Positions 36,495-59,000 of a stretch of DNA of 64,000 nt are shown here, piece after piece (the first letter of the stretch is position 1; every line of letters begins with the position of its first letter). The position numbers and the translations under genes are program-made. The notes under the pieces were generated by a model, which had not been told where the DNA came from, searched no databases, and worked only from the letters and a program-made list of their open reading frames with translations. This DNA is from Macrostomum lignano. Taxonomy: Eukaryota. The stretch is from NCBI GenBank assembly GCA_002269645.1, contig NIVC01003949.1, positions 1 through 64,000 on the forward strand, written 5' to 3'.

Positions 36495-37840
36495 CTAGAT
36501 CCAGAGTTGCTGGGCCAGCCTCCCAGATCGATCCTCAGTTGCTGGACCAGCCTCCCAGAGTGTCAGTTGCTGGGCCAGCCTCCCAAATCCTCAGTTGCTG
36601 GACCAGCCTCCCAGAGTGTCAGTTGCTGGGCCAGCCTCCCAAATCCTCAGTTTCTGGGCCGGCCTCCCAAATCCTCAGTTGCTGGGCCAGCCTCCCAAAT
36701 CCTCAGTTGCTGGACCAGCCTCCCAGAGTGTCAGTTGCTGGGCCAGCCTCCCAAATCCTCAGTTTCTGGGCCGGCCTCCCAAATCCTCAGTTGCTGGGCC
36801 AGCCTCCCAAATCCTCAGTTGCTGGACCAGCCTCCCAGAGTGTCAGTTGCTGGGCCAGCCTCCCAAATCCTCAGTTTCTGGGCCGGCCTCCCAAATCCTC
36901 AGTTGCTGGGCCAGCCTCCCAAATCCTCAGTTGCTGGACCAGCCTCCCAGAGTGTCAGTTGCTGGGCCAGCCTCCCAAATCCTCAGTTTCTGGGCCAGCC
37001 TCCCAAATCCTCAGTTGCTGGGCCAGCCTCCCAAATCCTCAGTTTCTGGGCCGGCCTCCCAAATCCTCAGTTGCTGGGCCAGCCTCCCAAATCCTCAGTT
37101 GCTGGGCCAGCCTCCCAAATCCTCAGTTTCTGGGCCGGCCTCCCAAATCCTCAGTTGCTGGGCCAGCCTCCCAAATCCTCAGTTTCTGGGCCGGCCTCCC
37201 AGAGTGTCAGTTGCTGGGCCAGCCTCCCAAATCCTCAGTTTCTGGGCCGGCCTCCCAAATCCTCAGTTGCTGGGCCAGCCTCCCAAATCCTCAGTTGCTG
37301 GACCAGCCTCCCAGAGTGTCAGTTGCTGGGCCAGCCTCCCAAATCCTCAGTTGCTGGGCCGGCCTCCCAAATCCTCAGTTGCTGGGCCAGCCTCCCAAAT
37401 CCTCAGTTTCTGGGCCGGCCTCCCAGAGTGTCAGTTGCTGGGCCAGCCTCCCAAATCCTTAGTTTCTGGGCCGGCCTCCCAAATCCTCAGTTGCTGGACC
37501 AGCCTCCCAGAGTGTCAGTTGCTGGGCCAGCCTCCCAAATCCTCAGTTTCTGGGCCGGCCTCCCAAATCCTCAGTTGCTGGGCCAGCCTCCCAAATCCTC
37601 AGTTTCTGGGCCGGCCTCCCAGATCCTCAGTTGCTGGGCCAGCCTCTCAGATCCCCAGTTTCTGGGCCAGCCTTCCAGATCCCCAGTTGCTGGGCCAGCC
37701 TCCCAGATCCTCAGTTGCTGGGCCAGCCTCTCAGTTCCCCAGTTCTGGGCCAGCCTCTCAGATCCCCAGTTGCTGGGTCAGCCTGTCAGATCCTCAGTTG
37801 CTGGGCCAGCCTTCCAGATCCTCAGCTGCTGTGCCAGCTT
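36495..37840. repeat. 28-bp minisatellite family B, locus 1 (~48 copies)
   Basis: Unit CCTCCCAAATCCTCAGTTGCTGGGCCAG. Confidence 0.95.
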
Positions 37841-38586
37841 CAGAGTGGCACTAAAGCTGCCTATTAGAATGCACCGAACACCTCGCGAAATCGGTTTAGG
37901 TCTAACCGTACGAAGTCACAGTCTTCTTGTCTTCGAAACTGCTCAAGCCTCACATACCCGACCTATATAATTATGCCGTTTAGCTACGGGAAACCTATAT
38001 TTGCATTGAATCTTTCAGTGCTCCACTGTTTGTGTTGAGTTATTATTTAGATCTTCTATTTTTTAAATAAGTGACTCTTAAGGTCTGGCGTCCCCCTCTC
38101 TCTCTGTATATAAACTCATCAACTGTCTTGACTGGCTGCTTTCTCACTGTAGACACAAGGCGTTTTCTTGACAGGTCTGGGTATGCTGTTGGTCTATCTA
38201 AAGCTAATACAATGGCTAGAGTAAACTCTCTCTGGTTTGGCGAATGAGTATAGAAATGCATGATGAGAAGGCATCGCCTACCCTTCACGGTCTTCTTTTT
38301 CTTAGCTATAATTGTGTTTGATCATTTTTTCGGCTATCTCTCTACACTCCAGTTTGCACTGTGGTTGGCTGAAAAGCTCGTGCATTTAATAAAAAACCTC
38401 TACTCTCAATCTGCACCTCTCTCTCTCTCTCTCTCTAAGCTACTCTGCGTAGAGGTATAAAGGCAGTTTTTTTGTTGAAAAAGACCGTTTCAATTATTTA
38501 TATTAGAAAAATAGTATTTATTTAGTATATTTAGATTGAGAAAGACGCGGTCTTACGTGTAGCTCGAGAATTTCTGTTAGCTCAAC

Positions 38587-41500
38587 ATGGTGGTCAGGTC
38601 AGCCTTTGTCTGCCTGGTGATCTTATCATTGAGTATAGGTGAGTCTATCGGTGTCTTATGTTAGACAATTAACGCGTCGCCTGTTAGATAGGGATACAAT
38701 GTACATCACCTGTTATATATGAGTACATTATCTGTTAGACACGCGGCCATCACCTGTCAGGCACACGGCCATCACCTGTTAGACACACTGCTATCACCTG
38801 TTAGACACACTGCCATCACCTGTTAGGCACAGGGCCATCACCTGTTAGACACACGGCCATCACCTGTTAGGCACAGGGCCATCACCTGTTAGACACACGG
38901 CTATCACCTGTTAGGCACACTGCCATCACCTGTTAGACACACGGCCATCACCTGTTAGACACACGGCCATCACCTGTTAGACACACGGCTATCACCTGTT
39001 AAACACACGGCCATCACCTGTTAGACACACGGCTATCACCTGTTAAACACACGGCCATCACCTGTTAGGCACACGGCCATCACCTGTTCGGCACACGGCC
39101 ATCACCTGTTAGACACACGGCCATCACCTGTTAGACACACGGCCATCACCTGTTAGACACACGGCCATCACCTGTTAGGCACACTGCTATCACCTGTTAG
39201 ACACACGGCCATCACCTGTTAGACACACACTGCCATCACCTGTTAGGCACAGGGCCATCACCTGTTAGACACACGGCCATCACCTGTTAGGCACACGGCC
39301 ATCACCTGTTAGACACACGGCCATCACCTGTTAGGCACACTGCTATCACCTGTTAGACACACGGCCATCACCTGTTAGACACACACTGCCATCACCTGTT
39401 AGGCACAGGGCCATCACCTGTTAGACACACGGCCATCACCTGTTAGGCACACGGCCATCACCTGTTAGGCACACTGCTATCACCTGTTAGACACACGGCC
39501 ATCACCTATTAGACGCACCACCATCAGCTGTTAGGCACACGGCCCGCACCTGTTAGACAAGTTCAACCTTTATTACCGAAATTCCCTCCGCTAATCCCAG
39601 TCACCATGACAACAGCCGCCTCCGCCTGCGGTGGCTACCGCGAAGGCCTCAACACCGGCCAGTCGTTCACCCTGACCTCGCCGAATTATCCCAGCAACTA
39701 CGATAGAAATCAGCGCTGCATTTGGCTGTTTGCAGCCAAGAATGGCACCGGATTTCGTATTAATGTCACTTCAGTCAGTTTAGAGGGCACCGGCAACAAC
39801 AGCACCGGCTGCAGAGACTACTTGCAGATCACGGATGGCAGCTCGGTGGCCACTGAGCTGGCCTACCTGTGCCAGGTGGGTGTCTTTGCATATTTGATTT
39901 CATATATAGAATTTAAAGGCTTCCAGTGAGATTTCTTTAGATTGGTAATTTTCTTAGTTTTAAGAGGCGTCATGGATTTTATGGTGTTCCATGGTTTTCT
40001 GCATGTAAATGTACATGACTAAATTTCTAAATGTACTCGGGTGTGGGGACGAAGCCAAGAGTTATTATTACCAACATTATTGGTGTTGTCAGCGCTCATT
40101 TTAGCGCCTCAGGCACTCATTTTGGGGCCTCAGGCTCTCATTTTGGTGCCTCAGACTTTCATTTTGACACCATTTTAGTGCCATTTTGGTTCCACTAACT
40201 ACCGCAAACATTTTCAGGTGTCGAGTCCGTTACTATTAACAGCTAATCGTGTCTACCTGTGGGTGAAATTTCAAAGCAATCACCAAATCCAAGGCGCAGG
40301 ATTTCAGATGACAGTAACTACAGTGACTGACATCACTTCTGTTAGCAACAGCACGCCTGTAAAATGTGCGTTGGAGATTAAAATCCCCTTTTCTAAGCTT
40401 AGTTGTAATTAAAATCCCATTACCTATCCCCAATTAGGATTGAAACGAAATCCCATAACATATTACAAAATAGGATTGAAATCCCATCACATGTACCTAT
40501 TCCCAATTAGGATCAAAATCCCATTACCTATCCCCAATTAGGATCGAAATCCCATCACATGTACCTATTCCCAATTAGGATCAAAATCCCATTACCTATC
40601 CCCAATTAGGATCGAAATCCCATCACATGTACCTATTCCCAATTAGGATCAAAATCCCATTACCTATTCCCAATTAGGATAAAAAATCCCATTACCTATT
40701 CCCAATGAAGATCAAAATCCCATTTCCTATCCCCAATTAGGGTCAAAATTCCATTACCAATTCCTAATTAGGATCAAAATCCTAGTACCTATTTTTCAAT
40801 TAGGATTAAAATCCCATTACCTATCCACAGTTAGGATCAAAATCCCATTACCTATAGGATCAAAATCCCATTAGCTATAGGATCAAAATCCCATTACCTA
40901 TAGGATCAAAATCCCATTACCTATTCCCATGAAGATCAAAATCCCATTGCCTATTACCAATTAAGAAGCATAATCCATTTTTTCCTAAACTGGGATAAAA
41001 ATCCCCATGTACACGTATGCATCGAATCAACATCGAGTTATCCCCTAACCGCAGCATGTAAAAATAGGTACACCTGTCCGAACAAGGAGTGCGTTTATCA
41101 GGGCAGTCTGTGCGACAACATCAACGACTGCGGCTGCGATGACTATGGTTGCGACGAGACCAAATGTTGGAAATTCGAATTTCTTAACGGTGAAGAACTG
41201 ATGGGAGTTTTACTGATTCACTAGGATCAATTGGGATTCAGATCCCCATAATATCAATAATTGGGATTCAGATCCCCATAATCTCAAACAATAGGGATTT
41301 AGATCCCCATAATCTCAAACAATTGGGATTCAGATCCCCATAATGTCAAACAATTGGGATTTAGATCCCCATAATGTCAAACAATTGGGATTTAGATCCC
41401 CATTTTCTCAACAATTGGGATTCAGATCCCCATTTTCTCAACAATTGGGATTCAGATCCCCATAATCTCAAACAATTGGGATTCAGATCCCCATAATGTC

Positions 41501-43593
41501 AACAATTGGGATTCAGATCCCCATTTTCTCAACAATTGGGATTTAGATCCCCATTTTCTCAAACAATTGGGATTTAGATCCCCATAATCTCAAACAATTG
41601 GGATTCAGATCCCCATAATGTCAAACAATTGGGATTTAGATCCCCATTTTCTCAACAATTGGGATTCAGATCCCCATAATCTCAAACAATTGGGATTTAG
41701 ATCCCCATAATGTCAAACAATTGGGATTTAGATCCCCATAATGTCAAACAATTGGGATTTAGATCCCCATTTTCTCAACAATTGGGATTCAGATCCCCAT
41801 TTTCTCAACAATTGGGATTCAGATCCCCATAATCTCAAACAATTGGGATTCAGATCCCCATAATGTCAACAATTGGGATTCAGATCCCCATTTTCTCAAC
41901 AATTGGGATTTAGATCCCCATAATCTCAAACAATTGGGATTCAGATCCCCATAATGTCAACAATTGGGATTTAGATCCCCATAATGTCAACAATTGGGAT
42001 TTAGATCCCCATAATGTCAAACAATTGGGATTTAGATCCCCATAATCTCAAACAATTGGGATTCAGATCCCCATAATGTCAACAATTGGGATTTAGATCC
42101 CCATAATGTCAACAATTGGGATTTAGATCCCCATAATGTCAAACAATTGGGATTCAGATCCCCATAATGTCAACAATTGGGATTCAGATCCCCATTTTCT
42201 CAACAATTGGGATTCAGATCCCCATAATCTCAAACAATTGGGATTCAGATCCCCATAATCTCAACAATTGGGATTTAGATCCCCATTTTCTCAACAATTG
42301 GGATTCAGATCCCCATAATGTCAAACAATTGGGATTCAGATCCTATACTGACTGCAAAGATTCAAAATCTCCCCTTCACAATGGGGATAAATATCCCACT
42401 TTCCTATATTCTTTTCGTCGCAGACCCGTCGGTTGTGTGGGGCCTTGGCATGGGCATCGGCCTGACGCTTTCCATCGCAGTGTTCATCATCTGCGGCTTC
42501 GTCGAGATGCCGGAGCGCAAAAGGCCCGAGTGCATGCGACGGAGGGAGAACCAAACTGGAGGCTGCCTGGGCAGGTGCGGCGCCAAGAACAAGGTGCAGC
42601 AGCAGGCACCCGAGGACGCTTTCATGGCCATGATGAAAAGGATGACCGCTGGGAAATCCCTGCAGTGGTGAGGAAAAGGAATTTTATAGCGTGTCTAACA
42701 GATTACATTGTTCATGTCTAACAGGTTGCATTATCCATGTCTAACAGGTTACATTATCCATGTCTAACAGGTTACATTATCCATGTCTAACAGGTTACAT
42801 TATCCATGTCTAACAGGTTACATTATCCATGTCTAACAGGTTGCATTATCCATGTCTAACAGGTTGCATTATCCATGTATAACAGGTTACATTATCCATG
42901 TCTAACAGGTTGCATTATCCATGTCTAACAGGTTGCATTATCCATGTATAGCAGGTTACATTATCCATGTCTAACAGGTTACATTATCCATGTCTAACAG
43001 GTTACATTATCCGTGTCTAACAGGTTACATTATCCGTGTCTAACAGGTGACATTATCCATATCGAACAGTTCAAGGGGCCGCAAGATAAGCACTGTAGGA
43101 TAAGCGCTGTAGGATAAGCGCCACAGGATAAGCGCCACAAGATAAGTGCCACAGGATAAGCGCCACAGGATAAGCGCCACAGGATAAGCGCCACAGGATA
43201 AGCGCCACATGATAAGCGCCACAGGATAAGCGCCACAGGATAAGCGCCACAGGATAAGCGCCACAGGATAAGTGCCACAGGATAAGCGCCAAACTGTATT
43301 CCGAACAACCGCAACCCTTGCGCAGGGAGGGCGCAGATTCGGACGAGTCCACCACTCGAAGCAGCAGTCGCGCCGACGTCTCCCGCCGGAGCTCCGTGTC
43401 GGTCGGCAGCGCCCTCGGCAGCCGACGCTCTTCGGTGTACGCGCCAACCTACGGCAACACGCTTAGCCCGAATTATTCAGCGCCAAGACCGGCGGCGTCG
43501 CCGACGACGGCGGCTGCCAACGCAGCGCCGCAGACGGAGCAGAAACCGCCGGGACCGGTGACCTTGGCCGTGCCGAAAGTGAGCTCAACTTGA
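38587..43593 (+). CDS. Signal peptide-CUB-LDLa-TM type I membrane protein (~373 aa; MIG-13/LRP12/NETO-like architecture); exons 38587-38638, 39601-39875, 40218-40365, 41055-41189, 42424-42667, 43326-43593
   Basis: SP MVVRSAFVCLVILSLSI. CUB TSPNYPSNY...CIW...CRDYLQI...FQSN...GAGF. LDLa CPNKEC...LCDNINDC...DE. TM WGLGMGIGLTLSIAVFIICGFV. All junctions GT-AG and phase-consistent (exon 3 donor least certain). Confidence 0.85.
38735..39560. repeat. 22-bp minisatellite, CTAACAGGT-core family, CUB gene intron 1
   Basis: Unit CACCTGTTAGACACACGGCCAT, ~37 copies. Confidence 0.95.
39963..40190 (+). mobile_element. Degenerate copy of the 21-bp-satellite-carrying hAT-like element
   Basis: Shares CATGGATTTTATGGTG, CATGACTAAATT and GTTGTCAGCGCTCATTTT with 56392-56520, followed by ~4 decayed units. 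Confidence 0.7.
40405..40975. repeat. ~31-bp minisatellite, CUB gene intron 3
   Basis: Unit GGATCAAAATCCCATTACCTATCCCCAATTA with length variants. Confidence 0.92.
41228..42345. repeat. 30/31-bp minisatellite (~36 copies), CUB gene intron 4
   Basis: Unit ATTGGGATTCAGATCCCCATAATCTCAAACA, containing a GGGAT-TCAG-ATCCC hairpin. Confidence 0.95.
42712..43060. repeat. 23-bp minisatellite, CTAACAGGT-core family, CUB gene intron 5
   Basis: Unit CTAACAGGTTACATTATCCATGT, ~15 copies. Confidence 0.95.
43095..43290. repeat. 14-bp minisatellite, CUB gene intron 5
   Basis: Unit CAGGATAAGCGCCA, ~14 copies. Confidence 0.95.
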
Positions 43594-44269
43594 GCTACTG
43601 GTGCTCAGCTGAGCAGCCTTGCTTTTGTTTTATTTGTAGATTCTTTGTTGGATATTAATAAAAATAGTAGTCTTTGTTTGAGTATAGATGTCTTTGAGTA
43701 CATGTGTCTTTGTCTGAGTACAGGTGTCTTTGTCTGAGTACAGGTGTCTTTGAGTACAGGTGTCTTTGAGTACACGTGTCTTTGTTTGAGTACGGGTTTC
43801 ATCGCTTTCAAGTTTTTATTACTCTTGAAAATCGACAGACTTCAACCCTATTTCTATTTTCAATCAACACTTCTTAAATGCTTTTTTAAAGCTTAAACTA
43901 TACATTTAAGCTGTTACGTAGCTTAGTGAAAAAGCTGTTTTTCTGTACACAAGAGAATTTGTCTACCTGCAAATTACCTATCTTGCATAAAGAGAGCTCC
44001 TGGATTGACTGAATGATTTGTTTTTTATATTAAAAAGTAATTTTTTTACCTGTCATTTTTTATTTTAAGCACTTCATAGGCTTATGGTGGCATAAGTAGA
44101 CCAAGACAACCCAACTTACATACATCGAGATATTATTCGCTACCTATCTAGAGACTTTCTTACACGTCTAGAGACCATTAATCTAGATCTAGAGAACTGG
44201 ACAATTACCTAAATGCTGTAGAACCAATCTATAAGACCCACCTGGAGCACCCCAGGAAATTAACAGTCA

Positions 44270-44800
44270 CTGATCTAGAAACCCTGTCACTGATCTAGAG
44301 ACCCTGTCACTGATCTAGAGACCCTGTCACTGATCTAGAGACCCTTTCACTGATCTAGAGACCCTGTCACTGATCTAGAGACCCTGTCACTGATCTAGAG
44401 ACCCTGTCACTGATCTAGAGACCCTGTCACTGATCTAGAGAACCTGTCACTGATCTAGAGACCCTGTCACTGATCTAGAGACCCTGTCACTGATCTAGAG
44501 ACCCTGTCACTGATTTAGAGACCCTGTCACTGATCTAGAGACCCTAAGTCACTGATCTATATATCCTGTCACTGATCTAGAGACCCTAAGTCACGGATCT
44601 ATATATCCTGTCACTGATCTATAGACCCTGTCACTGATCTATAGACCCTGTCACTGATCTATATATCCTTTCACTGATCTATAGACCCTGTCACTGATCT
44701 AGAGACCCTAAGTCACGGATCTATACATCCTGTCACTGATCTATAGACCCTGTCACTGATCTATAGACCCTGTCACTAATTTACAGACCGTCACTGATCT
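44270..44800. repeat. 20-bp minisatellite
   Basis: Unit CCCTGTCACTGATCTAGAGA, ~26 copies. Confidence 0.95.
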
Positions 44801-45520
44801 TTAGACATCTCGATAGACATCTAGAGACCCTACATTTCGCTCGTATGTACCATCATTGCTTTCACAAAGCAATATCTTTGCCTCTGTCAACAGAAAGCCA
44901 GATGCAGGAAAGTCTTCCTTCCACTAATTGGCGCAGCTGTGTTCAGCGCTATGCCAAAAATAGACAGACAGATGGCCCTCCTGTCAACGGCAAAAGAGAA
45001 AAAGTATAATTCATAACTTATGGGTCCGCTGCAGTTGCAGTTTCTTTTTTGCAAAAGAAACCGAAAGTGTGTAACAAAAAGACAGTCGGTCACGGGAGGC
45101 TAAAAGTACACGGGGCAGTAACCTCTGCAGAACAGCTGTCGTAGGAGTGAAGGTCGGTTAGATCCTAATCGCACCTCTGCCAGCAAAGAACAGAAAATCT
45201 TCTTTTCGAAGAAACTGTCGATCAACCGGAAAAGCTCCTGTCTTCTGGAGTCTGTTGGCGGGCTGCTTTGGTTAGAAGAAATACTCACTTGGTAAAGACA
45301 GTCCGGCTCTCTCGGGATTAAAGTGAGTTACTCGTAGTGGGTAGCCAGTCCAGCCTATCGATTTATCTGCCACTGGCTGGTCTGGCTTCAAATAATTCTC
45401 CCGGGGCCTGCCAACCAACTGCCGAGCGACAGATTTCCAGCTGTCTACCAGTGAGACTCTCGTGTTAAAACATCAAAGTCCAGAGGTCGGCAAACTCCCT
45501 TGATTCGATTCCGACGCGCT

Positions 45521-45561
45521 GACTGACTGACTAACTAACTAACTGACTAACTGACTAACTG

Positions 45562-45592
<31 letters not shown>

Positions 45593-45653
45593 GACTAACT
45601 AACTAACTGACTAACTGACTAACTGACTAACTAACTAACTAACTAACTAACTG

Positions 45654-45700
<47 letters not shown>

Positions 45701-45713
45701 GACTAACTAACTG

Positions 45714-45756
<43 letters not shown>

Positions 45757-45817
45757 GACTAACTAACTGACTAACTAACTAACTAACTGACTAACTAACT
45801 AACTAACTAACTAACTG

Positions 45818-45861
<44 letters not shown>

Positions 45862-45897
45862 CCTAACTAACAAACTAACTAACTAACTAACTAACTG

Positions 45898-45940
<43 letters not shown>

Positions 45941-45953
45941 GACTAACTAACTG

Positions 45954-46004
<51 letters not shown>

Positions 46005-46065
46005 GACTAACTAACTGACTAACTAACTAACTAACTGACTAACTAACTAACTAACTAACTAACTG

Positions 46066-46097
<32 letters not shown>

Positions 46098-46098
46098 C

Positions 46099-46132
<34 letters not shown>

Positions 46133-46154
46133 GACTAACTAACTGACTAACTAG

Positions 46155-46188
<34 letters not shown>

Positions 46189-46189
46189 G

Positions 46190-46224
<35 letters not shown>

Positions 46225-46390
46225 GTCTTACTAACTAACTAACTAACTAAGTGACTAACTAACTAAATAAATAAATAATTAACTAACTAACTAACTAACT
46301 GACTAACTAAAATAACTAACTAACTAACTGTCTTACTAACTAACTAACTAACTAACTGACTGTCTAACTAACAAATTAACTAACTTAGTT
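45521..46390. repeat. (TAAC)n microsatellite, ~870 bp
   Basis: CTAA repeats interspersed with CTGA. Confidence 0.97.
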
Positions 46391-47504
46391 ACTAGCACAC
46401 TGTGAAAATTAACTTTCAATTAAATGTGCACTTCTCAATAAAGATTGTTCAGAAAAATAAACAAACCACCTGTCTGTCTGCCTCTCCATCGTGAGACTGT
46501 GGGTTTTGCCGCTCAATTGGTGTGGGAAAATTCAGTGGATCAATAACTCTTGCATAAGCAAACAGAATCCCGTAGTGTAAACCCTTTATTAGCATCGATT
46601 CTCAAGGCCCAGGGAGTGAACTGATTAGGAAGATTGCCATAGCAGTGGCATTGCCCAATCCGCTTGTAATCAGTTTAAAATCGACATTCTGTAGGAATAT
46701 TGTGTAAAACTTTGATGCATAGTGCTTATAACATAAATATTATACTAGTGCATAGTAGCAGAGCAGTAGACTTGCTCGCAAATTGTGTCGGAAACAGAAC
46801 GAGGTCAGACGGGAGAGAGTGAAGGCGAGGGAGAGGATCGAGAAGGGAGAGAGAGAGTTAAGGAGCGAGGAGTGAGTGAGAGGCGAAGGCAGCTGCTGCC
46901 TCTGCTGGGTAGTTTCTGGACCTTGGCCAATAAAATCGAAGCCCCACATGGCCAGCCAGAGAGCCTCAATACCCAGGCTTCCCACCCAAGGACCCGCTGA
47001 TCCCGAATGCTTGGCCCTCTCGGTTTCGTTCGCCTCCGTTTCTAACTCTCGTCCTCCCTCTCTCCCCCTTCTATTTCCCCTCTCACTTCAGTCTCTGCCA
47101 GTCTTAAAGCTCTGTCGTTCAAAATTGTTCAATCCTTGACAGTTGGGGAACCTCGTTGTCCCCCAGTTAATTCCCTCAACTCCCCTCTCTACTCCCTTTG
47201 CTTCTTAGCCAAGGGTTCAAGAAATAGGACACCAAAAAAATCCGAGGCAAAACTCAAACTTCACTTGTTTTTGTTCGACCAGATCGGAAAGGTAAGGCGA
47301 ATCATGGCTGATGGATTTCTGGCTTGTAGTTGTAGGTGATGTAGGTGATAATGATTATTTGGGCCAAGCCCCAAGGCAGAGACCTTTTTATAGGAACCCG
47401 ACTTTTATTACTTTCATTATTAATCAGACTTTTATCAGGCACCTGACTTTTATTACTTAATTTGGCACCAAAAGCAGCTGGCATCAGCTGCTTTGCATGA
47501 ATGC

Positions 47505-47893
47505 ATTTTACTGCAGGGTGACAAAACATAGCGCCTGCGGCGCTAAAATGAGCGCCTGCGGCGCTAAAATGAGTGCCTGCGGCGCTAAAATGAGTGCCTG
47601 CGGCGCTGAAATGAATGCCTGCGGCGCTAAAATGAGTGCCTGCGGCGCTAAAATGAGTGCCTGCGGCGCTAAAATGAGTGACTGCGGCGCTAAAATGAGT
47701 GCCTGCGGCGCCAAAATGAGTGCCTGCGGGGCTAAAATGAGTGCCTGCGGGGCTAAAATGGGTGCTGACAACACCGGTTCTAAAAGTAATTGGTACATGA
47801 TAATTTTTATAAAAAAATGGAAAAATCTAACTCGACAGGGGGCCGCCACTGAACCTGCCCCCCCCCCAAATTTTTGAAACGTTCCTACGCCTG
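47505..47893 (-). mobile_element. hAT-like MITE fragment carrying 11 units of the 21-bp satellite
   Basis: Minus-strand end CAGGCGTAGGAAC...G-run. Both array junctions match those of the 56392-58464 element. The other end is missing. Confidence 0.65.
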
Positions 47894-48002
47894 TCTCAAA
47901 ATACGAGTAGGATGTCCTGAAGAGATGGAGTATCAGAGTTTCTTTATTCAGTAACGATCCTCACTGTCTCCTCTCTGGATTTCAACAGTCAGTCGGAGAG
48001 AC

Positions 48003-48740
48003 ATGCCAGGCTACGACGCTCTGAACACGCAGACAGCCCCAAGCAAGTCGGTGTTCGACAGTCAGCAACTGTCCAGACCGGCTGCCTACCGGCACTGCGG
48101 CCGCGCCAGCCTCATTATCGGCATTGTCTGCATCCTGGCCGAGGTGTCCGTGTTCGTGCTCAAACGCGGCCTCACCACACTGGGCGTGGGCATCTGGACT
48201 GGAGCGACATTTGTAATGTTCGGCGCAGCGAGCATGGCGGTGCCAAAAACTCGGAGCGTCTGCAGCGTCAACACCTGCTTCGCCATGGCCCTGTGCTCCA
48301 TGGCCATCTGCGTACTCGGCGTCCTGGCCTGCATAGTCCACATCCTGATGCTGCACTCCATCCTGCAGTACAATTACACTCCGCGGCCGAATTTTGAGTT
48401 GACCTGTGAAATCTGCGGCCTGGCAATCATCATGAAGGAAGTTGGTCAGGTGGTGCTGCTGCTGGCTCAGTTCCTCGTCTCCCTGGCGCTGCTGTACTTC
48501 GCTTACACCGACTGCTTGTGCTGCCGGGCCACCGAGACTGAGGTCATCATGCAGGGCGGCTCGGGCCCGGCAAAACCTGCAGCTGCCCCTGCGGTCCCGG
48601 GTTCGATCGCTGTGAACATGCAGGCCATGCAGGGCTCGACGAATCATCAGTCCAGCCAGGGTGGCAACGTGTTCTCTCAGCTGGCCTCGGCCAGAATCGG
48701 CGGAGCCAGCGCCTCCGGCCCCATGCTGTACGAACTCTGA
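48003..48740 (+). CDS. MS4A/CD20-like four-transmembrane protein, 245 aa, single coding exon
   Basis: Four hydrophobic segments, GIWTGATFVMFG in TM2, a CLCC after TM4, GC-rich coding-like composition, and an acceptor 14 nt upstream of the ATG. Confidence 0.8.
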   Translation: MPGYDALNTQTAPSKSVFDSQQLSRPAAYRHCGRASLIIGIVCILAEVSVFVLKRGLTTLGVGIWTGATFVMFGAASMAVPKTRSVCSVNTCFAMALCSMAICVLGVLACIVHILMLHSILQYNYTPRPNFELTCEICGLAIIMKEVGQVVLLLAQFLVSLALLYFAYTDCLCCRATETEVIMQGGSGPAKPAAAPAVPGSIAVNMQAMQGSTNHQSSQGGNVFSQLASARIGGASASGPMLYEL

Positions 48741-49264
48741 TGTGAATTTTGTGAGCTGAATTTCGTGTTTTACTGCTGTTAATTATTAGTTAATAACTGA
48801 AATGCATTGTACATACGCATACGACTTTAGTGGATCGTATTTTTTAAGATCAGTTATCTTCTTAAATGCAAATCTGAACTCTAAATTGAACTTGAAGAAT
48901 GGCAATTTTTAAGAAGAAAGAATTTTTAAAGCTAATTTTCTTGCTGTTTTTCTTCTTGTTACAAAAAGAATCAATTATTATTTATTATTCACCTCAGACG
49001 TATCTTAGCACACGACTGCTCTTGCCCAGAAAATTGCTTCTTGAAAGATTTTTTTCACTATCTCTTCAACCAAGTGTTTTTTATGCGTATTTGTCATACA
49101 AGCACAAGAAAACACTGGAGCAGACGGAGAACCTTAAAGTAATTTCTGCGTGTTTTGTTTTAATTTTATTTTGAAGTGAGTCGTTCGTTTCTTTAATTGG
49201 TTTATTTAAAAGGAGGAGTGTGAGACTGTAAGACTACAAGAGTCTAACAGAGGCTATTAAAGAG

Positions 49265-49720
49265 TCAGACACTGCTTGAGAAATGACGAGAGGGTCAGAC
49301 ACTGCATGAGAAATTATGAGAGGGTCAGACACTGCATGAGAAATTATGAGAGGGTCAGACACTGCATGAGAAATTATGAGAGGGTCAGACACTGCATGAG
49401 AAATTATGAGAGGGTCAGACACTGCATGAGAAATTATGAGAGGGTCAGACACTGCATGAGAAATTATGAGAGGGTCAGACACTGCATGAGAAATTATGAG
49501 AGGGTCAGACACTGCATGAGAAATTATGAGAGGGTCAGACACTGCATGAAAAATTATGAGAGGGTCAGACACTGCATGAGAAATTATGAGAGGGTCAGAC
49601 ACTGCTTGAGAAATGATGAGAGAGTCACACACTGCTTGAGAAATGATGAGAGAGTCACACACTGCTTGAGAAATGACCAGAGAGTCAGACACTGCTTGAG
49701 AGATGACCAGAGAGTCAGAC
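49265..49720. repeat. 30-bp minisatellite (~15 copies)
   Basis: Unit GAGAGGGTCAGACACTGCATGAGAAATTAT. Confidence 0.95.
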
Positions 49721-51754
49721 CCGGTTCTGCAAGGAAACTGTTAAAACACAGAAATATACAAAAATTAAAATAAATCCACCAGATTCATAATTATAATTGA
49801 AATTCAAGAGAATTTTATAAATATTTTATGTGCTTTCTCTGCGATTTATTTAGCAGAAAAGAAGGTATTGAAGCATTTTCTATATTCACAAGCAGTTCGT
49901 GCAAAGCAAAACACTTCACAATACAGAAAATCGTTAAATTATTTATGGAAAATGACAGAACAGAAAAGTCGAGATGCGGTTTACATAATAAAACTGGCGA
50001 GGCACAATGGGACACTTCAAAATACAAAGTTGCATGCAATCACATTTTAGCCGACTTGCAATTGTACACTAAAAGCGACAGAGACACGAAACAATAGTTT
50101 TTAGTTTCTTAATAGATGAGAAAGCATATCGATCTTTTACTTTTTTGGTGCTCTTGAGAATAGATATTCTCTATTTACTGTCTTTTTAACTACTGTTAAT
50201 CAGTAGTGTAAGCGAATGTTTCAGGGCTGGCTCTTTTTTTTATTTTCAATATCAAAATATGCAATCTCAAGGGCCAACTCGTGTGTTTGAAAATTGACTT
50301 ATCGAAGGAAATTCAGGTAAAGTATCGGCGTAGAAACACGGAACAGTAATTATATTGGGTGACAGACGAAACCGGTACATTGTAATTCATCAAGATTACA
50401 CGAAATTTAACTCGATTATTATTTTAACTCAGAAACGTCACAGTTACCATAGAAAAGTGTTTTTAAAACATTAGGTGTAGTTAAACTCGTGGGCGTTAAT
50501 TGTTTTGTTATAGTGCGTGTTGCAGACTATAGATTTTTGAAAACGCGACAATATTTAACAAAAAAATCTAGCTGGTAATTTGCCAATGAAGCTTGTTGAG
50601 TTACTCGACGTAAGTTGTATTAAATATGTGCTCGCGAAATTCATAGCGCTTACTACTCTCGCAGAAGTGTACTTTTCACAGGTATAAAATGCAGGTATGC
50701 GGTACAGGACCTTACCGAAACACACACAATATATATAGAACTCAGTGTGGATTATAACAAATTGATACGTTATTACAATGGAAATCGAAGCAGATTCACG
50801 TAATGTAAAAGCAAATTTAGAAATTTCTAATTTATGTTAAAAAATAAAAATTCACTTCGTCGTCAGTGACACAGTCAGTTAAAATCAATTGCTACACACA
50901 ATAATAGCCAAACAATGTTATAACTAAATTTTTTCTTTAACGTTACATACGCACAAACCACATACATTTGCTCACAGAGCTCCCTACAGCGACACTCAAA
51001 TTTTGGGCTTCTGCAAAGTTTATGTCGATGTCCGAAATTATTACCAGTTGCATATATCCGCCTCGTGTATGCATGTAGCTAAACAGAAATTGCAAATGTC
51101 TATGGCCATTCTGTCTCCTCATTTGCCAGGTTAGGACCATAGACAACTTTTAAGGGTTCTAATTATAGGCTTAGATTCACCGTCAATTGAGTCAAGCCTT
51201 TTGGAAGATAATCGATTTCGTACAAACAAACAAACAAACCATTTTTAGTATATGGATGCTGAATATTGTTGTGAATGGGACGTAACTTCCAGTGAGTGAA
51301 ACGAGTATGAGAGCGTGCTAAAGTTTGGCTACGAAAAGTCCAACTCCTTTGTGAAACTAGAGACTGCAGAATTTCACTCATTGAATAAGAGTTTTTAGTG
51401 CTTGCAAGAGTGCCATATATGTTGCCGCAATGAAGGACTCACTTCTTGCACACTTGCCTTTCTCCCCTTCACACGATACTGTTTTTTAAACGTACTTTCC
51501 TACAACCGACAAAAATTTAGATATGCAAGAAAATACAGCCTTACTACATCAGCCATAGAAACAACAACTCAATGTCACTATGTAGACTCGTCTAGTTCGA
51601 TCAGGTGCTTACGGTAATTAAGCTCTCTGGTCGGTTATACTGCCGGCTTGGGCGACTTGCAGCCTCCCGGCCAGCCATCGGACTGGTGGCTGAGCTCTCC
51701 AGACCGTTGACAGCTGCGGTTGGTTTGAGTTGAGATGAGGCGTTACATGTGGGT

Positions 51755-51917
51755 AGTTAGTTGGTTATTTAGTTAGTTAGTTAGTTAGCTAGTTAGTTAG
51801 TTAGTTAGTCAGTTAGTTAGTCAGTTAGTCAGTTAGTTAGTTAGTTAGTTAGTTAGTCAGTTAGTTAGTTAGTCAGTTAGTTAGTTAGCTAGTTAGTTAG
51901 TTAGTTAGTTAGTTAGC

Positions 51918-51968
<51 letters not shown>

Positions 51969-52158
51969 CTAGTTAGTTAGTCAGTTAGTCAGTTAGTTAG
52001 TCAGTTAGTTAGTTAGTTAGTTAGTCAGTTAGCTAGTTAGTCAGTTAGTTAGTTAGTTAGCTAGTTAGTTAGTTAGTTAGTCAGTTAGTCAGTTAGTCAG
52101 TTAGTTAGTTAGTTAGTTAGTTAGTCAGTCAGTTAGTTAGTTAGTCAGTCAGTTAGCT
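51755..52158. repeat. (GTTA)n microsatellite, ~400 bp
   Basis: Reverse complement of the 45521-46390 array. Confidence 0.97.
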
Positions 52159-53020
52159 ATTTCAGGAACTCACTGTTGAAATTGGAGGCGTGAGACACCA
52201 CCCTCGGCTCCCCGGGGCTGTGCGCGTCGCGATGATTGTCGTCTGAAAGCGATCGAGGGAAAAAACTGTTTATATTTTCGGAATATTTCTCCACTGTAAA
52301 ACGACAAAAATTTTAGCATTTAAATCAAGCGTCACTCATGCCGTGGTAAAAATATTCAATCAATGAGATGTTTCGTACTATTAAATCATTTTAGGAGTAT
52401 AGCTAATTTTCAGTACGTCCATCATGCTTAAATAACGAAAAAGTGGCTACAGATTATTTGATTTCGCGAGACCAACAAAAACAATAATATTTTACTTGTT
52501 AATTGAAGATATTGTTGGTTCTTATAATGTGTCACAGAAAAAAAATATTAATTAGGCTGTTTGTTAGTCGTAATAACACTTTAACAATATCGAAAAAGCA
52601 AAATACTCCTTATTTTGTAATTAAAATTAGAAATTAAAGTCGTAGCATTTTTAAAACAGAAAGAAGAGTATCGTCATTTGTTGCTTTTAACTAAACAAAA
52701 ATATTTTCTGACGTTTGAATAGGCATTAAATTTTTGCCCCCCCCCCTACTGAATCTAGTAGTCTGTAAAGTATATTACATTCGATACATATTTTAGAAAG
52801 TTTTATCGGTTCCATATCGATGGATGTTTAAAATATTTTGCTCTGAAACTCAATCATTAGTTGCTATGCAGTTATAGAGCAGAGTAAGTAAAAATTTCTA
52901 CGAGAAACCAAGGTTAAGTCGAGACAAAATTCGAAGACAGTATTATAGGTTATTATTATAGAGGATTAAATATATTCGATTGCTTGAACTTTAGCACAGG
53001 TGGCTTTGTCTAAAAAACTG

Positions 53021-56000
53021 TTAGAAAAAGTATATTGATAGAGGGGTACCGCTGTCATCGTCATTAGCAGACGAAGCCCTCGGACTGAGCGAAATCGGCT
53101 GCTCAACGGAGGCCAAAACTGGCTCAGCTTCGAGTTGAATCACGGCAGCTCTTCGAGCGCCCAGCTGCATCGCCGAGCTGTTGCAGAGCGCTGTTGAATC
53201 GCCTCCGCTGCTTAGCAGCATCGGCAGGTGGTCCTCTTTTATACCTGATCGACATTCGAGAACGATCGGTTTTTCGGGTTTTCTTAGTTTGCTGGACAAC
53301 AGAGTAAGGCAAAGCTAGCAGTCATGCTTATTCCACTGAGCCCCTTGAGAATGCTCACGCAGGGTGCACACTCTCTGCACCTTGTGTTTAGGGTGAGGTA
53401 ATTAACTCTCATGGTCGGGAAATGCAGCGACAAAGCACTCCACGTCAATTTTAAAGTGCACGCGTTACTTTAATTTAGTATTTTCAAATCCACTCAAAAA
53501 ATAGATGATGATTAAAACAAATGATGATTCAAACAAAATACCTTGGATTGAATTGTCTTGAAACATTTAGGCGACAAAACATAGGATGAGCTACCTGACC
53601 CGTTTTTTTATGTTTCATGCTAAAAATTGACTTTCAAAATTTTTTAAAGAATTGGTTCATTTTCAAAGGTTTCATCATCATTCGTTTTTACAAGCGTAAT
53701 TTGTTACTCTGACAATTTGAATTAGGCAAGCCGAAGTTTCAATAATGAGTCCAATAAATAGTGCAGTTAAAGTCGAGCCAATTTCTGTATCAATAAAAGT
53801 CTGTCTGTAACCTTGACGATAGGCTTTGCGGAAGTGGATATTGTTTTCTACGCACTTCAAAATTCTTACCTACACGAGAGTTGGCCAAAGGTTGGAATTA
53901 GCTAGCTCGTACCCAGAATCATATCTGTAGCTTAATTTCACTCTATGCGCCATTTTTGTTTTTTTATTCGATACAAAAGTGTGACGCGTAGACATTTTAT
54001 TGTGCTGAAGATGCTTCAATGTGTATCATATTTTGCGCTGAGAAGTAGCTAAACGGCTGCATCGCAACAAGCTGAGATGGTCTCATTGGTTTCAACAGAA
54101 TTAAAATACAGATCAGGTTCAACTTCCGTAAACAACCTACAAAAAGTGACCTAGGCATTGGATACATCTGAGATTAGATACTACAGTGTATTGGGATGAG
54201 GCGTCCCAATAATAAAGCTTATCCTAAAACGGAAAAAGACTGCCCTCTGTATAGTTCTCATCTGTCTGTTTGAAACAGCTTTTTTCTGTAGCCAAGGCTT
54301 GAATCCAATGGAATTTGCGACAGATAAAATTTACGGATGTTTCCTTTTAACCTTAGTAACCTACAGTATGTATACAATTGATATGTCATTCTGCTCATAC
54401 TGACACCAGCAAGAACTTGTGTTTGAAAATTGACAGCCCCTAATTTTATGCTTTTTGGGACACCCGTTAGTGTGCATTCTTTGATTCAGTGTGATTTTTT
54501 AAAGAATATTGATAAATAATAATTACAAAGTCTGAAACGATTTCCTTTCAGTTCTTTAATTGTTTTTGTATCCTAAAAGCCAAACAGTGAAATTCTTCAC
54601 GATAAGTAGAGTAAGGACGCAAACGGAAAATCCAGTGCATAATAATCCCGTACCTCTAGCTTTGGGCTTCAATGTGTAACCTCTGTCCCTCTAAGGTCCC
54701 TCTAAAACTTTTTTGTTCTAATGGAACCCAACCTTTGACAAGCTTCATTTAAAACGCTAGTACGCTCGTATTTATAGGCATAGAGGTCGCGATTTTACCT
54801 GTGCAATGCACATTTTGGCATTGACTAAATTTAACTTCTAGATCCTCTACAGTATATACAGAATGACTAATGCAGTCATCAAAATGTACCAATGGAAACC
54901 GCTTGAAAATTATGATTTGGTAAATGCGACGCAATGGCACAGCTTCCTGCTAGCTAACTGATGTTTTGGATGTATTATCTATCTGACCCGGCGATGATGC
55001 GTGGGTGCGGATGTACTTTTAAGTAAGATCAGAATTATATGTGAAATCGAACTACTCGAGAACTAAGATGATTCGCCCCTGTTGTCGTTGAAACTATAAT
55101 AGGTCACCGTGATGACACGTATGACCTTATGCCAACGTTCTACCATTATATATCCTGCTAGCTCAGTGATTCTTGGGTTTTGATGCACTTTTCAGCAAAC
55201 AAAACTGTTGATACTATAGCATTATGCAGGCACACAAAGATGTCTTTTAGGCTCTAACGAAGTCTACAACACTACAAAGCTGCTGCTGGTCTGAGTTCTG
55301 AACTATGCGAAGCATTGAAGACATATCTGTTGCTGTTGGAACTAATTCAACAGCAATTAAGTTGCTTACCGAACCGGTTGAATTTCGACTCCAAGACAGA
55401 GCTGCCCATTCCACCGCCGCCAACGACTTTGTCAGCGTTGGTTCTTCGGCCGCCGACGTGACTGGACGAGCCGCCGCCGCCGCCGCTGCCGCCGCCCGCG
55501 CTCTTCGCCCCGCTACCAGGCGGTCCCAGAGTCGCAGTTGGTGCCTTCGGCCTGACGGCTTCAACTGGTAGCACGCGGCGGCGCTTCTTTGGCAGCTTAC
55601 TGCGCGCTTGAGTGTGCGAGTAGAACATTGAGAAGTTGGACACGATCACTGGCACCGGCAGGGCGATGGTAAGCACTCCAGTCAGTGCGCACAGTGCTCC
55701 GACAAGCATTCCTGAGTATATTTTTCAAGTGATTTATGAGAATCAAAATATTTCCAACGTAAAAAAGTCGAGATGAACGCTTAGCAGTGCCAGTGTCAAT
55801 CAACACCCGATCGTGTATTTACAAAGCTATTTTAACGACTTTTAGGCACAGGACATGTATATAAGCTGGTACGTAGGATAAAAAATTTATATAGAATCCT
55901 AATTTTCTAAACGAAAAGCTCTACAAATTAGGACAATAGAACTTTTACAAAGGCAAGTCATATCAGAAGACGAACATTGGGTCTGCCTCCCATCAAAAGC

Positions 56001-59000
56001 AGCAATTGCAATTTTGGCGTTGAAAAAATGAAAACCTCTGTTCTCCGCAATGTATTTTTTCCCGGTAAAATCTGTCTCCTAATAATTTCCTACTTAAGTG
56101 GCTCAACCACCCTGTTCTAAATTCATCTTGCCTTTCAATATTTGTTTGACTGTTCTTCTCGTCTCTTTGAGAGCAACAATGCAAATTAGTTTCGAGTGAA
56201 AGACACTTGTTCTAGCTGCGGCCATTGTGCAAAGCAAACGCTACATTATTTAATCAGCATAGTAGTCTTTTGAATTCCCAGCGGACATGCAGCCGTCCGT
56301 TCCCATTTCAGTTCCAAACTGGATTTGTGTAAGACTAATTTAATCTACAGAAACAGCTTTGCTGGATCACTGGATATTCAGCTATTGTAGTCAGGGGCGT
56401 CGCCATGGATTTTATGGTGCGGGGGGGGGTGACAAAACCAAGAATTCAACATGAACATGTTCATGACTAAATTCCTACATTTCCATTATTTTGAGAATCG
56501 CGTTGTCAGCGCTCATTTTGGCGCCGCAGGCACTCATTTTGACGCCGCAGCCACTCATTTTAGCGCCGCAGGCACTCATTTTAGCGCCACAGGCACTCAT
56601 TTTAGCGCCGCAGTCACTCATTTTAGCGCCGCAGTCACTCATTTTAGCGCCGCAGTCACTCATTTTAGCGCCGCAGGCACTCATTTTAGCGCCGCGGGCA
56701 CTCATTTTAGCGCCGCAGGCACTCATTTTAGCGCCGCAGGCACTCATTTTAGCGCCGCAGTCACTCATTTTAGCGCCGCAGGCACTCATTTTAGCGCCGC
56801 AGGCACTCATTTTAGCGCCGCAGGCACTTATTTTAGCGCCGCAGGCACTCATTTTAGCGCCGTAGGCACTCATTTTAGCGCCGCAGGCACTCATTTTAGC
56901 GCCGCAGTCACTCATTTTAGCGCCGCAGGCACTCATTTTAGCGCCGCAGGCACTCATTTTGGCGCCGCAGGCACTCATTTTAGCGCCACAGGCACTCATT
57001 TTAGCGCCGCAGTCACTCATTTTAGCGCCGCAGTCACTCATTTTAGCGCCGCAGTCACTCATTTTAGCGCCGCAGGCACTCATTTTAGCGCCGCGGGCAC
57101 TCATTTTAGCGCCGCAGGCACTCATTTTAGCGCCGCAGGCACTCATTTTAGCGCCGCAGTCACTCATTTTAGCGCCGCAGGCACTCATTTTAGCGCCGCA
57201 GGCACTCATTTTAGCGCCGCAGGCACTTATTTTAGCGCCGCAGGCACTCATTTTAGCGCCGTAGGCACTCATTTTAGCGCCGCAGGCACTCATTTTAGCG
57301 CCGCAGTCACTCATTTTAGCGCCGCAGGCACTCATTTTAGCGCCGCAGGCACTCATTTTGGCGCCGCAGGCACTCATTTTGACGCCGCAGGCACTCATTT
57401 TAGCGCCGCAGGCACTTATTTTAGCGCCGCAGGCACTCATTTTAGCGCCGCAGTCACTTATTTTGGCGCCGCAGTCAGTCATTTTGGCGCCGCAGGCACT
57501 CATTTTGACGCCGCAGGCACTCATTTTAGCGCCGCAGGCACTCATTTTAGCGCCGCAGTCACTTATTTTGGCGCCGCAGTCACTCATTTTGGCGCCGCAG
57601 GCACTCATTTTAGCGCCGCAGTCACTTATTTTGGCGCCGCAGTCACTCATTTTGGCGCCGCAGGCACTCATTTTGACGCCGCAGCCACTCATTTTAGCGC
57701 CGCAGGCACTCATTTTAGCGCCGCGGGCACTCATTTTAGCGCCGCAGGCACTCATTTTAGCGCCGCAGTCACTCATTTTAGCGCCGCAGGCACTCATTTT
57801 GACGCCGCAGCCACTCATTTTAGCGCCGCAGTCACTCATTTTAGCGCCGCAGGCACTCATTTTAGCGCCTCAGGCACTTATTTTGGCGCCGCAGTCACTC
57901 ATTTTAGCGCCGCAGGCACTCATTTTAGCGCCGCAGGCACTCATTTTGGCGCCGCAAGCACTCATTTTAGCGCCGCAGGCACTCATTTTAGCGCCGCAGT
58001 CACTCATTTTAGCGCCGCAGGTACTCATTTTGGCGCCGCAAGTACTCATTTTAGCGCCGCAGGCACTCATTTTAGCGCCGCAGGCACTCATTTTAGCGCC
58101 GCAGGCACTCATTTTGGCGCCGCAAGCACTCATTTTAGCGCCGTAGGCACTCATTTTAGCGCCGCAGTCACTCATTTTAGCGCCGCAGGCACTCATTTTG
58201 GCACCGCAGGCACTCATTTTAGCGCCGCAGTCACTCATTTTAGCGCCACAGGCACTCATTTTAGCGCCGCAGGCACTCATTTTAGCGCCGCAGGCACTCA
58301 TTTTGGCACCGCAGGCACTCATTTTAGCGCCGCAGTCACTCATTTTAGCGCCACAGGCACTATTGTCGCCCTGCAGCAACATTATTGATTTCCATAACGG
58401 GTCACAAGGGGGGGACAAAGCATTGGCATGTCCCCTTGTCCCCCCCCCGGTGGCGACGCGCCTGTTTGTAGTTATAACCAACTATATCCACGTGAAAATC
58501 GAAGTTTTCACTAGACAAGGATAGTTTTCCAGTCTATCACGGGTTGCTCTAGTAGAGAGTTAATGGAATATCAGAGACTATCCTAACTTGGTCGATACGG
58601 CCAGGGTGGCACGGAGTCACACTACCCTCGGGCCATGTGTATCTGGGCGAGCAAAGTCATTTTTCCTACCGTACTATCCTACACTCTGTTTTATCCCATA
58701 CAGTCCATCTCTCTCGTTAGCGAATGCTCGCTTCATTAATTCCCATTGCATGCATGGCAAACTGTTGGGATATTTGCGCCCAACGGCTACCTAAGAGTTT
58801 AGGTCTTAGAGCTTCTTTTTCATTCCTTAGGGATTCTATAGTTGCTTATTTAATAGTTTCTTTTTCTGCAAAGGTGTGCGTGTAAGATTCTGTTTCATGT
58901 GCATGGATAACCTCCTGAGGGGTTCTTAAACGAAAACGATTTCTAAGAAATGAGCTGCATGATGGTAAGAAACGTGTCTGTATATATTTGTTGTTACGCT

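Follow-up and report, generated by a model that had tools for sequence, protein, structure and literature searches.

A 21-bp minisatellite carried between hAT-like transposon ends in an intron of the flatworm Macrostomum lignano

Introduction

MITEs (miniature inverted-repeat transposable elements) which contain internal arrays of variable repeat number, and whose descendants later lose their termini, have already been described, with miDNA4 and Xstir as the examples given in the literature cited here (PMC9659126, PMC12628747). Specifically, miDNA4 is presented there as a Tc1/mariner-type MITE of Xenopus tropicalis whose internal satellite varies in copy number (Scalvenzi & Pollet 2014; PMC9659126, PMC12628747). 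Related arrangements include the central arrays of pearl and Helitron elements (PMC12628747; PMC5139131) and the arrays that originate from the inverted termini of Tetris (PMC4079207). Here we analyse 64,000 nucleotides of the flatworm Macrostomum lignano (assembly GCA_002269645.1, contig NIVC01003949.1, positions 1 to 64,000 of the forward strand; henceforth the window), in which a transposon-like unit, element 1 (copy 1), encloses a long minisatellite with a 21-bp unit, and in which the same unit forms two smaller arrays, copies 2 and 3. We consider it probable that a non-autonomous, hAT-like cut-and-paste transposon carries this minisatellite, which then changes its unit number in place. 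Our literature search found no paper describing element 1.

The setting is a genome of which 15% consists of simple and tandem repeats, in an animal that serves as a model for regeneration and stem-cell biology and whose assembly has been hampered by such repeats (PMC5730564). A preliminary description of the window, made from its letters alone, had proposed that element 1 is a mobile seed which expands in place and thereby a candidate mechanism for seeding intronic satellites.

Results

A minisatellite enclosed by transposon ends

Tandem Repeats Finder identified three arrays of the 21-bp unit CTCATTTTAGCGCCGCAGGCA in the window. The largest of them (56512-58361; 88.1 units, 93% matches, 0 indels), which accords with the roughly 88 copies reported in the preliminary description, lies within element 1, whose parts are as follows (L001 is one of three contigs carrying versions of this locus; see below):

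56384..56391, + strand: target-site duplication of 8 bp, left copy (ATTGTAGT); left flank and duplication also present in L001
56392..56511, + strand: left arm of element 1, with z = 5.3 for the inverted repeat and z = 13 for homology to the left arm of copy 3
56392-56405: left terminal inverted repeat, 14 nt (CAGGGGCGTCGCCA), after which come a G9 tract, AT-rich sequence and the junction GTTGTCAGCG
56512..58361, + strand: 88-unit minisatellite (21-bp unit, consensus CTCATTTTAGCGCCGCAGGCA), fully in register and free of indels
56575..57372, + strand: 19-unit (399-bp) block in two exact tandem copies (56575-56973 and 56974-57372), 0 mismatches
58362..58464, + strand: right arm, made of a degenerate last unit and junction (CTATTGTCGCCCTGCAG) followed by a G7/C9 hairpin-like subterminal region
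58451-58464, + strand: right terminal inverted repeat (TGGCGACGCGCCTG), inside the right arm
58465..58472, + strand: right copy of the target-site duplication (TTTGTAGT), with one mismatch

Element 1 thus spans 2,073 bp (56392-58464), of which the non-repeat part amounts to 223 bp (arms of 120 and 103 bp, of the CAGGGGCGTCGCC... type). Its inverted termini, CAGGGGCGTCGCCA and CAGGCGCGTCGCCA, match at 13 of 14 positions, and past a 14-nt indel the inverted repeat resumes as C-G9-GACAA (i.e., a G9/C9 tract followed by GACAA), the inverted-repeat part taking up about 45 nt at the left end and about 30 nt at the right. The direct repeats abutting the element, ATTGTAGT and TTTGTAGT, agree at 7 of 8 positions, and 8 bp is the sole duplication length that works. 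The only resemblance between arm and unit in element 1 is at the right junction, which looks like a degenerate unit.

We scanned the surroundings of all 23 tandem arrays in the window for transposon ends, once with 14-nt termini and an 8-bp duplication and once, more broadly, with 12-nt termini and duplications of 5-10 bp. Termini matching at 13 or more of 14 positions together with a duplication matching at 7 or more of 8 were found in 0 of 200 flank shuffles and at none of the 22 other arrays, while the broader scan returned a single match, element 1 itself, against a null expectation of 0.0. Because these three controls (shuffles, other arrays, broader scan) exclude a chance origin of the ends, element 1 is real, as are the termini and target-site duplication with which the preliminary description had delimited it. 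The results support the view of element 1 as a transposon-like unit with inverted termini and a target-site duplication and with the minisatellite as its cargo; that is, the array sits inside the termini and the duplication, as in a transposon- or MITE-borne array. Element 1 is also alone in this respect: the remaining 22 of the 23 window arrays lack such inverted termini with a target-site duplication, and this comparison gave no support to the idea of a general seeding mechanism for intronic satellites.

A decayed copy shares terminus, arm and junction

Further evidence comes from copy 3, which is decayed:

39963..40094, + strand: left arm of copy 3, from a decayed terminus (AGAGGCGTC, a gap, then ATGGATTTTATGGTG) on to ...CATGACTAAATT..., with the junction GTTGTCAGCG at its end
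40095..40190, + strand: array of copy 3, about 3.4 recognisable units (CCTCAG variant) and then 11-bp partial units; no right arm

Tandem Repeats Finder reports 3.4 units at 40095-40166 (88% matches), or about 6 when decayed units are counted. Homology between the left arms of copies 1 and 3 starts at the terminus tip (z = 13; 0 of 500 shuffles), which bears out the shared left arm noted in the preliminary description, and the same junction, GTTGTCAGCG, joins arm to array in both. The two copies lie 16 kb apart on the same strand. Copy 3 occupies most of a 341-bp GT-AG intron (39876-40216) which splits a CUB domain, and an annotated CUB gene in contig L002 spans its position; element 1 lies between a potassium-channel exon ending near 59.9 kb and another at 55350-55724, both on the minus strand. 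Given that terminus, arm and junction are shared at unrelated sites, the array moved with the element, which supports its having travelled inside the element, and the best reading is that the element inserted independently at least twice (copies 1 and 3). Arm-array junctions are shared among dispersed copies whose unit number varies (88, 11 and about 3.4-6 units, with at least 6.5 in a gene model described below).

Copy 3 is identical in L002, while in L001 its arm carries a 57-bp deletion with the unit number unchanged. This deletion is an example of arm erosion. It lies between GGTGT microhomologies (L001 1152-1153, corresponding to window ~39984-40040).

Copy 2 shares both junctions but not the arms

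Copy 2 has the opposite orientation and sits in a block of sequence that the other assembled versions of the locus replace with something else:

47505..47781, - strand: copy 2, made of the right junction (47505-47532), 11 units (47533-47765) and the left junction GGTGTTGTCAGCA (47766-47781)
47470..47871, no strand assigned: window-specific block containing copy 2, 402 bp; L001-L003 carry other sequence at this place, about 104 bp

The array itself (47533-47765, reverse strand) comprises 11.1 units with 94% matches. The left junction, GTTGTCAGC, is common to copies 1, 2 and 3 (11 nt in copy 2), and the right junction, CTAT(GT)TTGTC(G/A)CCCTGCAG, which is about 24 nt long and resembles a degenerate last unit, is common to copies 1 and 2. 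The preliminary description was therefore right that copy 2 shares the unit and both junctions, but the CAGGCGTAGG terminus that it assigned to this copy is ordinary flank, because GAAACGTTCCTACGCCTGTCTCAAAATA, which contains CAGGCGTAGG, is matched by TTGAACGTTCCAAAACGCTTCTCAAAATA in three contigs that do not have the array. L001, L002 and L003 are all without copy 2; flank homology to them ends at 47469 and resumes at ~47873-47878, within the region of the supposed terminus, so that the site is a complex indel and not a clean insertion. Copy 2 is upstream of a single-exon, CD20-like coding sequence, about 240 bp from its ATG (48003), i.e., in the 5' flank or untranslated region and not in a demonstrable intron; of the three arrays, all of which the preliminary description had placed in introns, only copies 1 and 3 lie there.

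Two further features fall within the window-specific block (47470-47871). At 47470-47510, on one side of copy 2, a pair of small palindromes, AAAGCAGCTG-GCAT-CAGCTGCTTT and TGCAT-GA-ATGCA, makes up 41 bp. Beyond the other end of copy 2 (47837-47868), a terminus-like CAGGGGGCCGCCAC precedes C10, its relative orientation being the wrong one.

Copy 2 is not a terminus-bounded insertion, and we interpret it either as a rearranged element copy, at an arm-less end stage, or as a fragment of an array transferred during repair, independently of a transposase.

The array changes in place, as do its neighbours

A unit map of the large array revealed that units 4-22 equal units 23-41, with 19 variants in unchanged order. 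The two 399-bp blocks are identical base for base, and identity extends to 419 bp, so the 19-unit duplication of the preliminary description is exact. Contig L001 carries copy 1 at the same insertion site (left target-site duplication and terminus equal, G tract shorter), with an arm 93% and a flank 95% identical to those of the window, and there the order of unit variants differs from unit 1 onwards (first 12 units compared). Both the exact duplication and the different unit order show that the array alters in place after insertion.

This behaviour is not peculiar to element 1. For nearly every minisatellite at the locus, the window and the Mlig_3_7 contigs disagree in unit number, for example:

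30-bp array (49264-49720): 15 units in the window, 76 in L001, 120 in L002 and 120 in L003 (L002 and L003 agree at 120.3)
20-bp array (43670): 7 units in the window, 25 in L001, 25 in L002; L003 not covered
20-bp array (44266): 26.5 units in the window, 6.8 in each of L001, L002 and L003
31-bp array (41228): 36.6 units in the window, 54.6 in L001, 30.5 in L002; L003 not covered

An (ACTA)n array likewise has 216 or 375 units depending on the assembled version. Neither end scan found transposon ends at the other length-variable arrays of the window. Expansion in place is therefore general to the minisatellites here, with or without transposon arms, and is not conferred by the transposon. The mobile seed of the preliminary description accordingly stands in part: it is plausible for copies 1 and 3, and the array of element 1 changes in place, but copy 2 does not follow this pattern and the expansion is not specific to the element. 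A single-strand fold of the 21-bp unit, as a possible driver of slippage, was not unusual (z = -0.18).

The wider region is dense in such sequences, with more than 20 unrelated minisatellite families (units of 14-42 bp) within 35 kb (window 27840-63143). One 28-bp unit makes three separate arrays (36505-37838, 59437-59819 and 62283-63143), and three arrays with different units (38732-39559, 42692-43069 and 60261-61433) have a core in common, TCTAACAGGT, that looks like a branch point together with a splice junction.

Genes and assembled versions of the locus

The proteins encoded by exons of the window are a NEK-like kinase, a CUB-LDLa-TM protein, a CD20-like four-pass membrane protein and a Shaw/Kv3 potassium channel. 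The CD20-like exon shares 99% identity with M. lignano BOX15_Mlig024904g2, and a different M. lignano protein matches the channel exon at 87% identity. The CD20-like protein is present on three contigs of GCA_002269645.1 (L001-L003), which we compared with the window over 38000-55528. The window proved to be a mosaic, 100% identical to L002 at 38-41 kb (as far as about 41.2 kb) and to L003 at 54-55.5 kb and elsewhere mostly 92-98% identical to these contigs; by this pattern of identity, L001-L003 are allelic or duplicated versions of one locus.

A reverse-transcriptase open reading frame (ORF), a mariner-like DDE transposase ORF and a run of long ORFs (11.8-14.2 kb) occur within 8758-9609, 11813-14196 and 14474-15286, the run of long ORFs being at 11813-14196. 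The one long ORF scanned (13405-14196) has no Pfam match, and the ORFs of this run may encode a transposase of uncharacterised type. Rfam and tRNA scans of 39.5-59 kb gave no matches.

The unit elsewhere

A fourth M. lignano locus containing the unit was recovered through its translation. Model P0121 (UniRef) of the delta-aminolevulinic acid dehydratase (ALAD) gene reads about 6.5 repeat units as protein, with STHFGAAG...AAGTH standing where some 80 conserved core residues are expected; its first heptad has the junction-type S instead of G ('STHF'). Either an array was exonised in P0121 or the repeat there is an artefact of annotation. A search for nucleotide records of P0121 and of the potassium-channel relative P0001 found none. 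P0121 was the sole find of a word-indexed protein search with three-frame translations of the array, and an exhaustive HMMER search gave 976 low-complexity matches, among the best 150 of which the true heptad occurs in P0121 only. The unit pattern had 0 matches in JGI metagenome contigs and 0 in viral contigs.

Discussion

Weighing the explanations

Under the explanation that we favour, element 1 would be a non-autonomous cut-and-paste DNA transposon, MITE-sized without its cargo, which settled in an intron of a Shaw/Kv3-type potassium channel gene. The array, or a short version of it, would already have been inside the element at transposition, because the older, decayed copy 3, 16 kb away in the CUB-LDLa intron, shares terminus, arm, junction and units with it. 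Unit number would then have shifted in place, plausibly by replication slippage or unequal exchange, and arms would be lost gradually through small deletions of the kind seen in L001. Copy 2 would have reached or left its site through a complex indel, leaving it present in some assembled versions and absent from others.

A number of observations weigh against this account. There is one complete copy, and the target-site duplication is accordingly known from one element only, with one mismatch, instead of from several sites each with its own 8-bp duplication; copy 3 retains one end, copy 2 neither, and the copy in L001 is the same insertion, so the variable 8-bp duplications anticipated in the preliminary description were not seen. 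An empty site for element 1 was not found, as the element is in both informative versions (window and L001). For copy 2 we found no partner of CAGGCGTAGG or of the element-1 terminus within 2.5 kb, no inverted repeats in 46.4-48.0 kb and no target-site duplication; the non-repeat arms are common to copies 1 and 3 (z = 13) and not to copy 2 (z about 2), whose outer sequence shows no significant similarity to copy 1 in either arm (z = 1.8-2.1). The 28-bp and TCTAACAGGT-core families recur 'naked', without shared flanks, inverted termini or target-site duplication. The duplicated sequence ATTGTAGT, a single site, fits neither the Ac (nTnnnnAn) nor the Buster (nnnTAnnn) target preference (it has T at 2, G at 7 and GT at 4-5). 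No autonomous partner or transposase for element 1 was identified, the window holding only the mariner-like DDE ORF and the reverse-transcriptase ORF and no hAT transposase. Both the array size and the perfect duplication are known from a single assembly, and an unrelated 18-kb M. lignano locus (L004) contains neither unit nor arms.

Some of these points suit another explanation, which we regard as unlikely, namely that the array spread independently of a transposase (through extrachromosomal repeat circles, template switching or ectopic repair) and that the ends of element 1 are incidental to it; one possibility of this kind is that a MITE was there first and the array landed inside it or was captured by it. 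Copy 2 would fit such a process well, being a polymorphic block of array plus junctions which lacks inverted termini and a target-site duplication and has small palindromes at its flanks, as would the naked recurrence of the two other families. Transposase-independent spread does not readily account for copies 1 and 3, which at two unrelated sites share 120-130 bp of non-repeat arm, with the terminal inverted repeat as its exact start, and whose identical array-arm junction is predicted by movement of the whole element but unexpected for the transfer of a naked array.

The two processes could also have operated side by side within one family, with local hopping inside a hAT-like MITE giving rise to copies 1 and 3 and transposase-independent transfer to copy 2. 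We hold this combination to be a minor possibility. If it were true, copy 2 would be a polymorphism caught in the act, an array with edge units and palindromic filler at its border, and the transposase-independent route would also explain why other families in the window recur without transposon ends.

A separate question is whether element 1, if a transposon, belongs to hAT or to another class II superfamily with duplications of about 8 bp (P, Merlin, Mutator-like or Novosib), an alternative that we judge improbable. The hAT-type 5' motif is YARNG; Mutator and Merlin termini start with GG... and P termini with CATG... The left end of element 1, CAGGG, fits YARNG and differs from those other termini, while its right end, CAGGC, deviates at position 5. 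The 14-nt inverted termini (13 of 14 matching) and the 8-bp target-site duplication (7 of 8, in one element) form the textbook hAT pairing, the superfamily being characterised by inverted termini of 10-25 bp and 8-bp duplications (PMC3942097). In favour of another superfamily, the hAT call draws on the duplication length and the short inverted terminus, the duplicated site departs from the Ac and Buster consensus, and no hAT transposase is linked to the element. We therefore retain the hAT type of the preliminary description as a tentative label, suggested by one 8-bp duplication and one pair of short CAGGG termini; it has gained neither a transposase partner nor a second complete copy with a different duplication. 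Other classes agree less well with the architecture. Helitrons and Helentrons have no inverted termini or target-site duplication, carry 5'-TC...CTRR-3' ends with a 3' hairpin and insert between A and T, whereas element 1 ends in CAGG...CCTG with inverted termini and an 8-bp duplication. Foldback (Tetris-like) elements have long inverted termini built of tandem repeats, and the array of element 1 is a single, central block of direct repeats.

It is also conceivable, though we doubt it strongly, that the 88 units and the perfect 399-bp duplication are assembly artefacts, in which case the element would be real and its 'expansion' overstated. Long tandem arrays are error-prone to assemble, the Mlig_3_7 contigs break or differ at arrays (L002 stops near window 52.9 kb), and the L001 version of copy 1 is readable for its first 12 units only. 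On the other hand, the unit variants are diverse and ordered, not collapsed, and independent contigs show large, internally consistent length differences for all arrays, such as the agreement of L002 and L003 on the 30-bp array.

Finally, local segmental or exon-intron duplication without any mobile process, which the proximity of the arrays (within 18.5 kb) and the richness of the M. lignano assembly in duplicated blocks (PMC5730564) might suggest, is hardly credible and effectively refuted by an array-masked self-BLAST, which shows no flank similarity among the three copies, whose host genes (potassium channel, CD20-like, CUB-LDLa) are unrelated and of which copy 2 is in opposite orientation.

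Implications

Were a hAT-like carrier confirmed genome-wide, it would provide a concrete source for part of the large tandem-repeat fraction of M. lignano, and a flatworm, hAT-like case of the route from MITE to satellite. Arrays of this kind can matter to genes in several ways: they inflate introns (element 1 makes up half of a potassium-channel intron of about 4.2 kb), they are polymorphic near genes (copy 2, 240 bp upstream of a coding sequence) and they can contaminate gene models (the ALAD model reads the repeat as protein).

Comparison with known systems

Transposons that carry internal arrays include the pearl/CvA/DTC84 elements of bivalves and the Helitrons/Helentrons. They resemble it in having conserved ends around a central array of variable length, and in that their arrays occur both inside and outside elements, dispersed in gene-rich regions; elements of this type are nevertheless rolling-circle transposons without inverted termini or target-site duplications, both of which element 1 has (PMC12628747; PMC5139131). 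The foldback transposon Tetris of Drosophila virilis is likewise a DNA transposon that supplies the building blocks of expanding tandem arrays, but its tandem repeats lie within long inverted termini, whereas element 1 has short termini and carries its array centrally, as a cargo of direct repeats (PMC4079207). Similar ends are found in the Mar elements of Drosophila (PMC3517528) and the BuT2 MITEs (PMC3942097), which like element 1 are short and non-coding, have termini of 10-25 bp and 8-bp duplications and are found in or near genes. Mar and BuT2 have an identified hAT transposase master and many copies with different target-site duplications, neither of which we see for element 1; conversely, they are not described as minisatellite carriers (PMC3517528; PMC3942097), and element 1 is one.

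In the relation between element and array, the Xenopus MITEs offer parallels. For Xmix/Xstir of Xenopus laevis (Hikosaka & Kawahara 2004, as summarised in PMC12628747), forms with MITE only, MITE plus array and pure array are reported to coexist, as they do here, with the difference that the Xstir unit derives from the internal sequence or the inverted terminus of the MITE, while no derivation from the arms is recognisable for the 21-bp unit. The portrayal of miDNA4 in the cited papers also matches element 1: a short, non-autonomous element with inverted termini and an internal tandem repeat of one to many units, whose arrays grow in place and whose copies become 'naked' arrays on losing their termini, the same series being seen here in copy 1 (complete), copy 3 (one arm) and copy 2 (none). 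As portrayed there, miDNA4 differs in its TA duplication and Tc1/mariner affiliation (against an 8-bp duplication and CAGGG termini), in the phylum of its host, and in having a satellite monomer and a genome-wide family, where we document a 21-bp minisatellite in three or four copies. Element 1 thereby adds an example to an already described pathway linking MITEs and tandem repeats, the mechanism of which has been established elsewhere.

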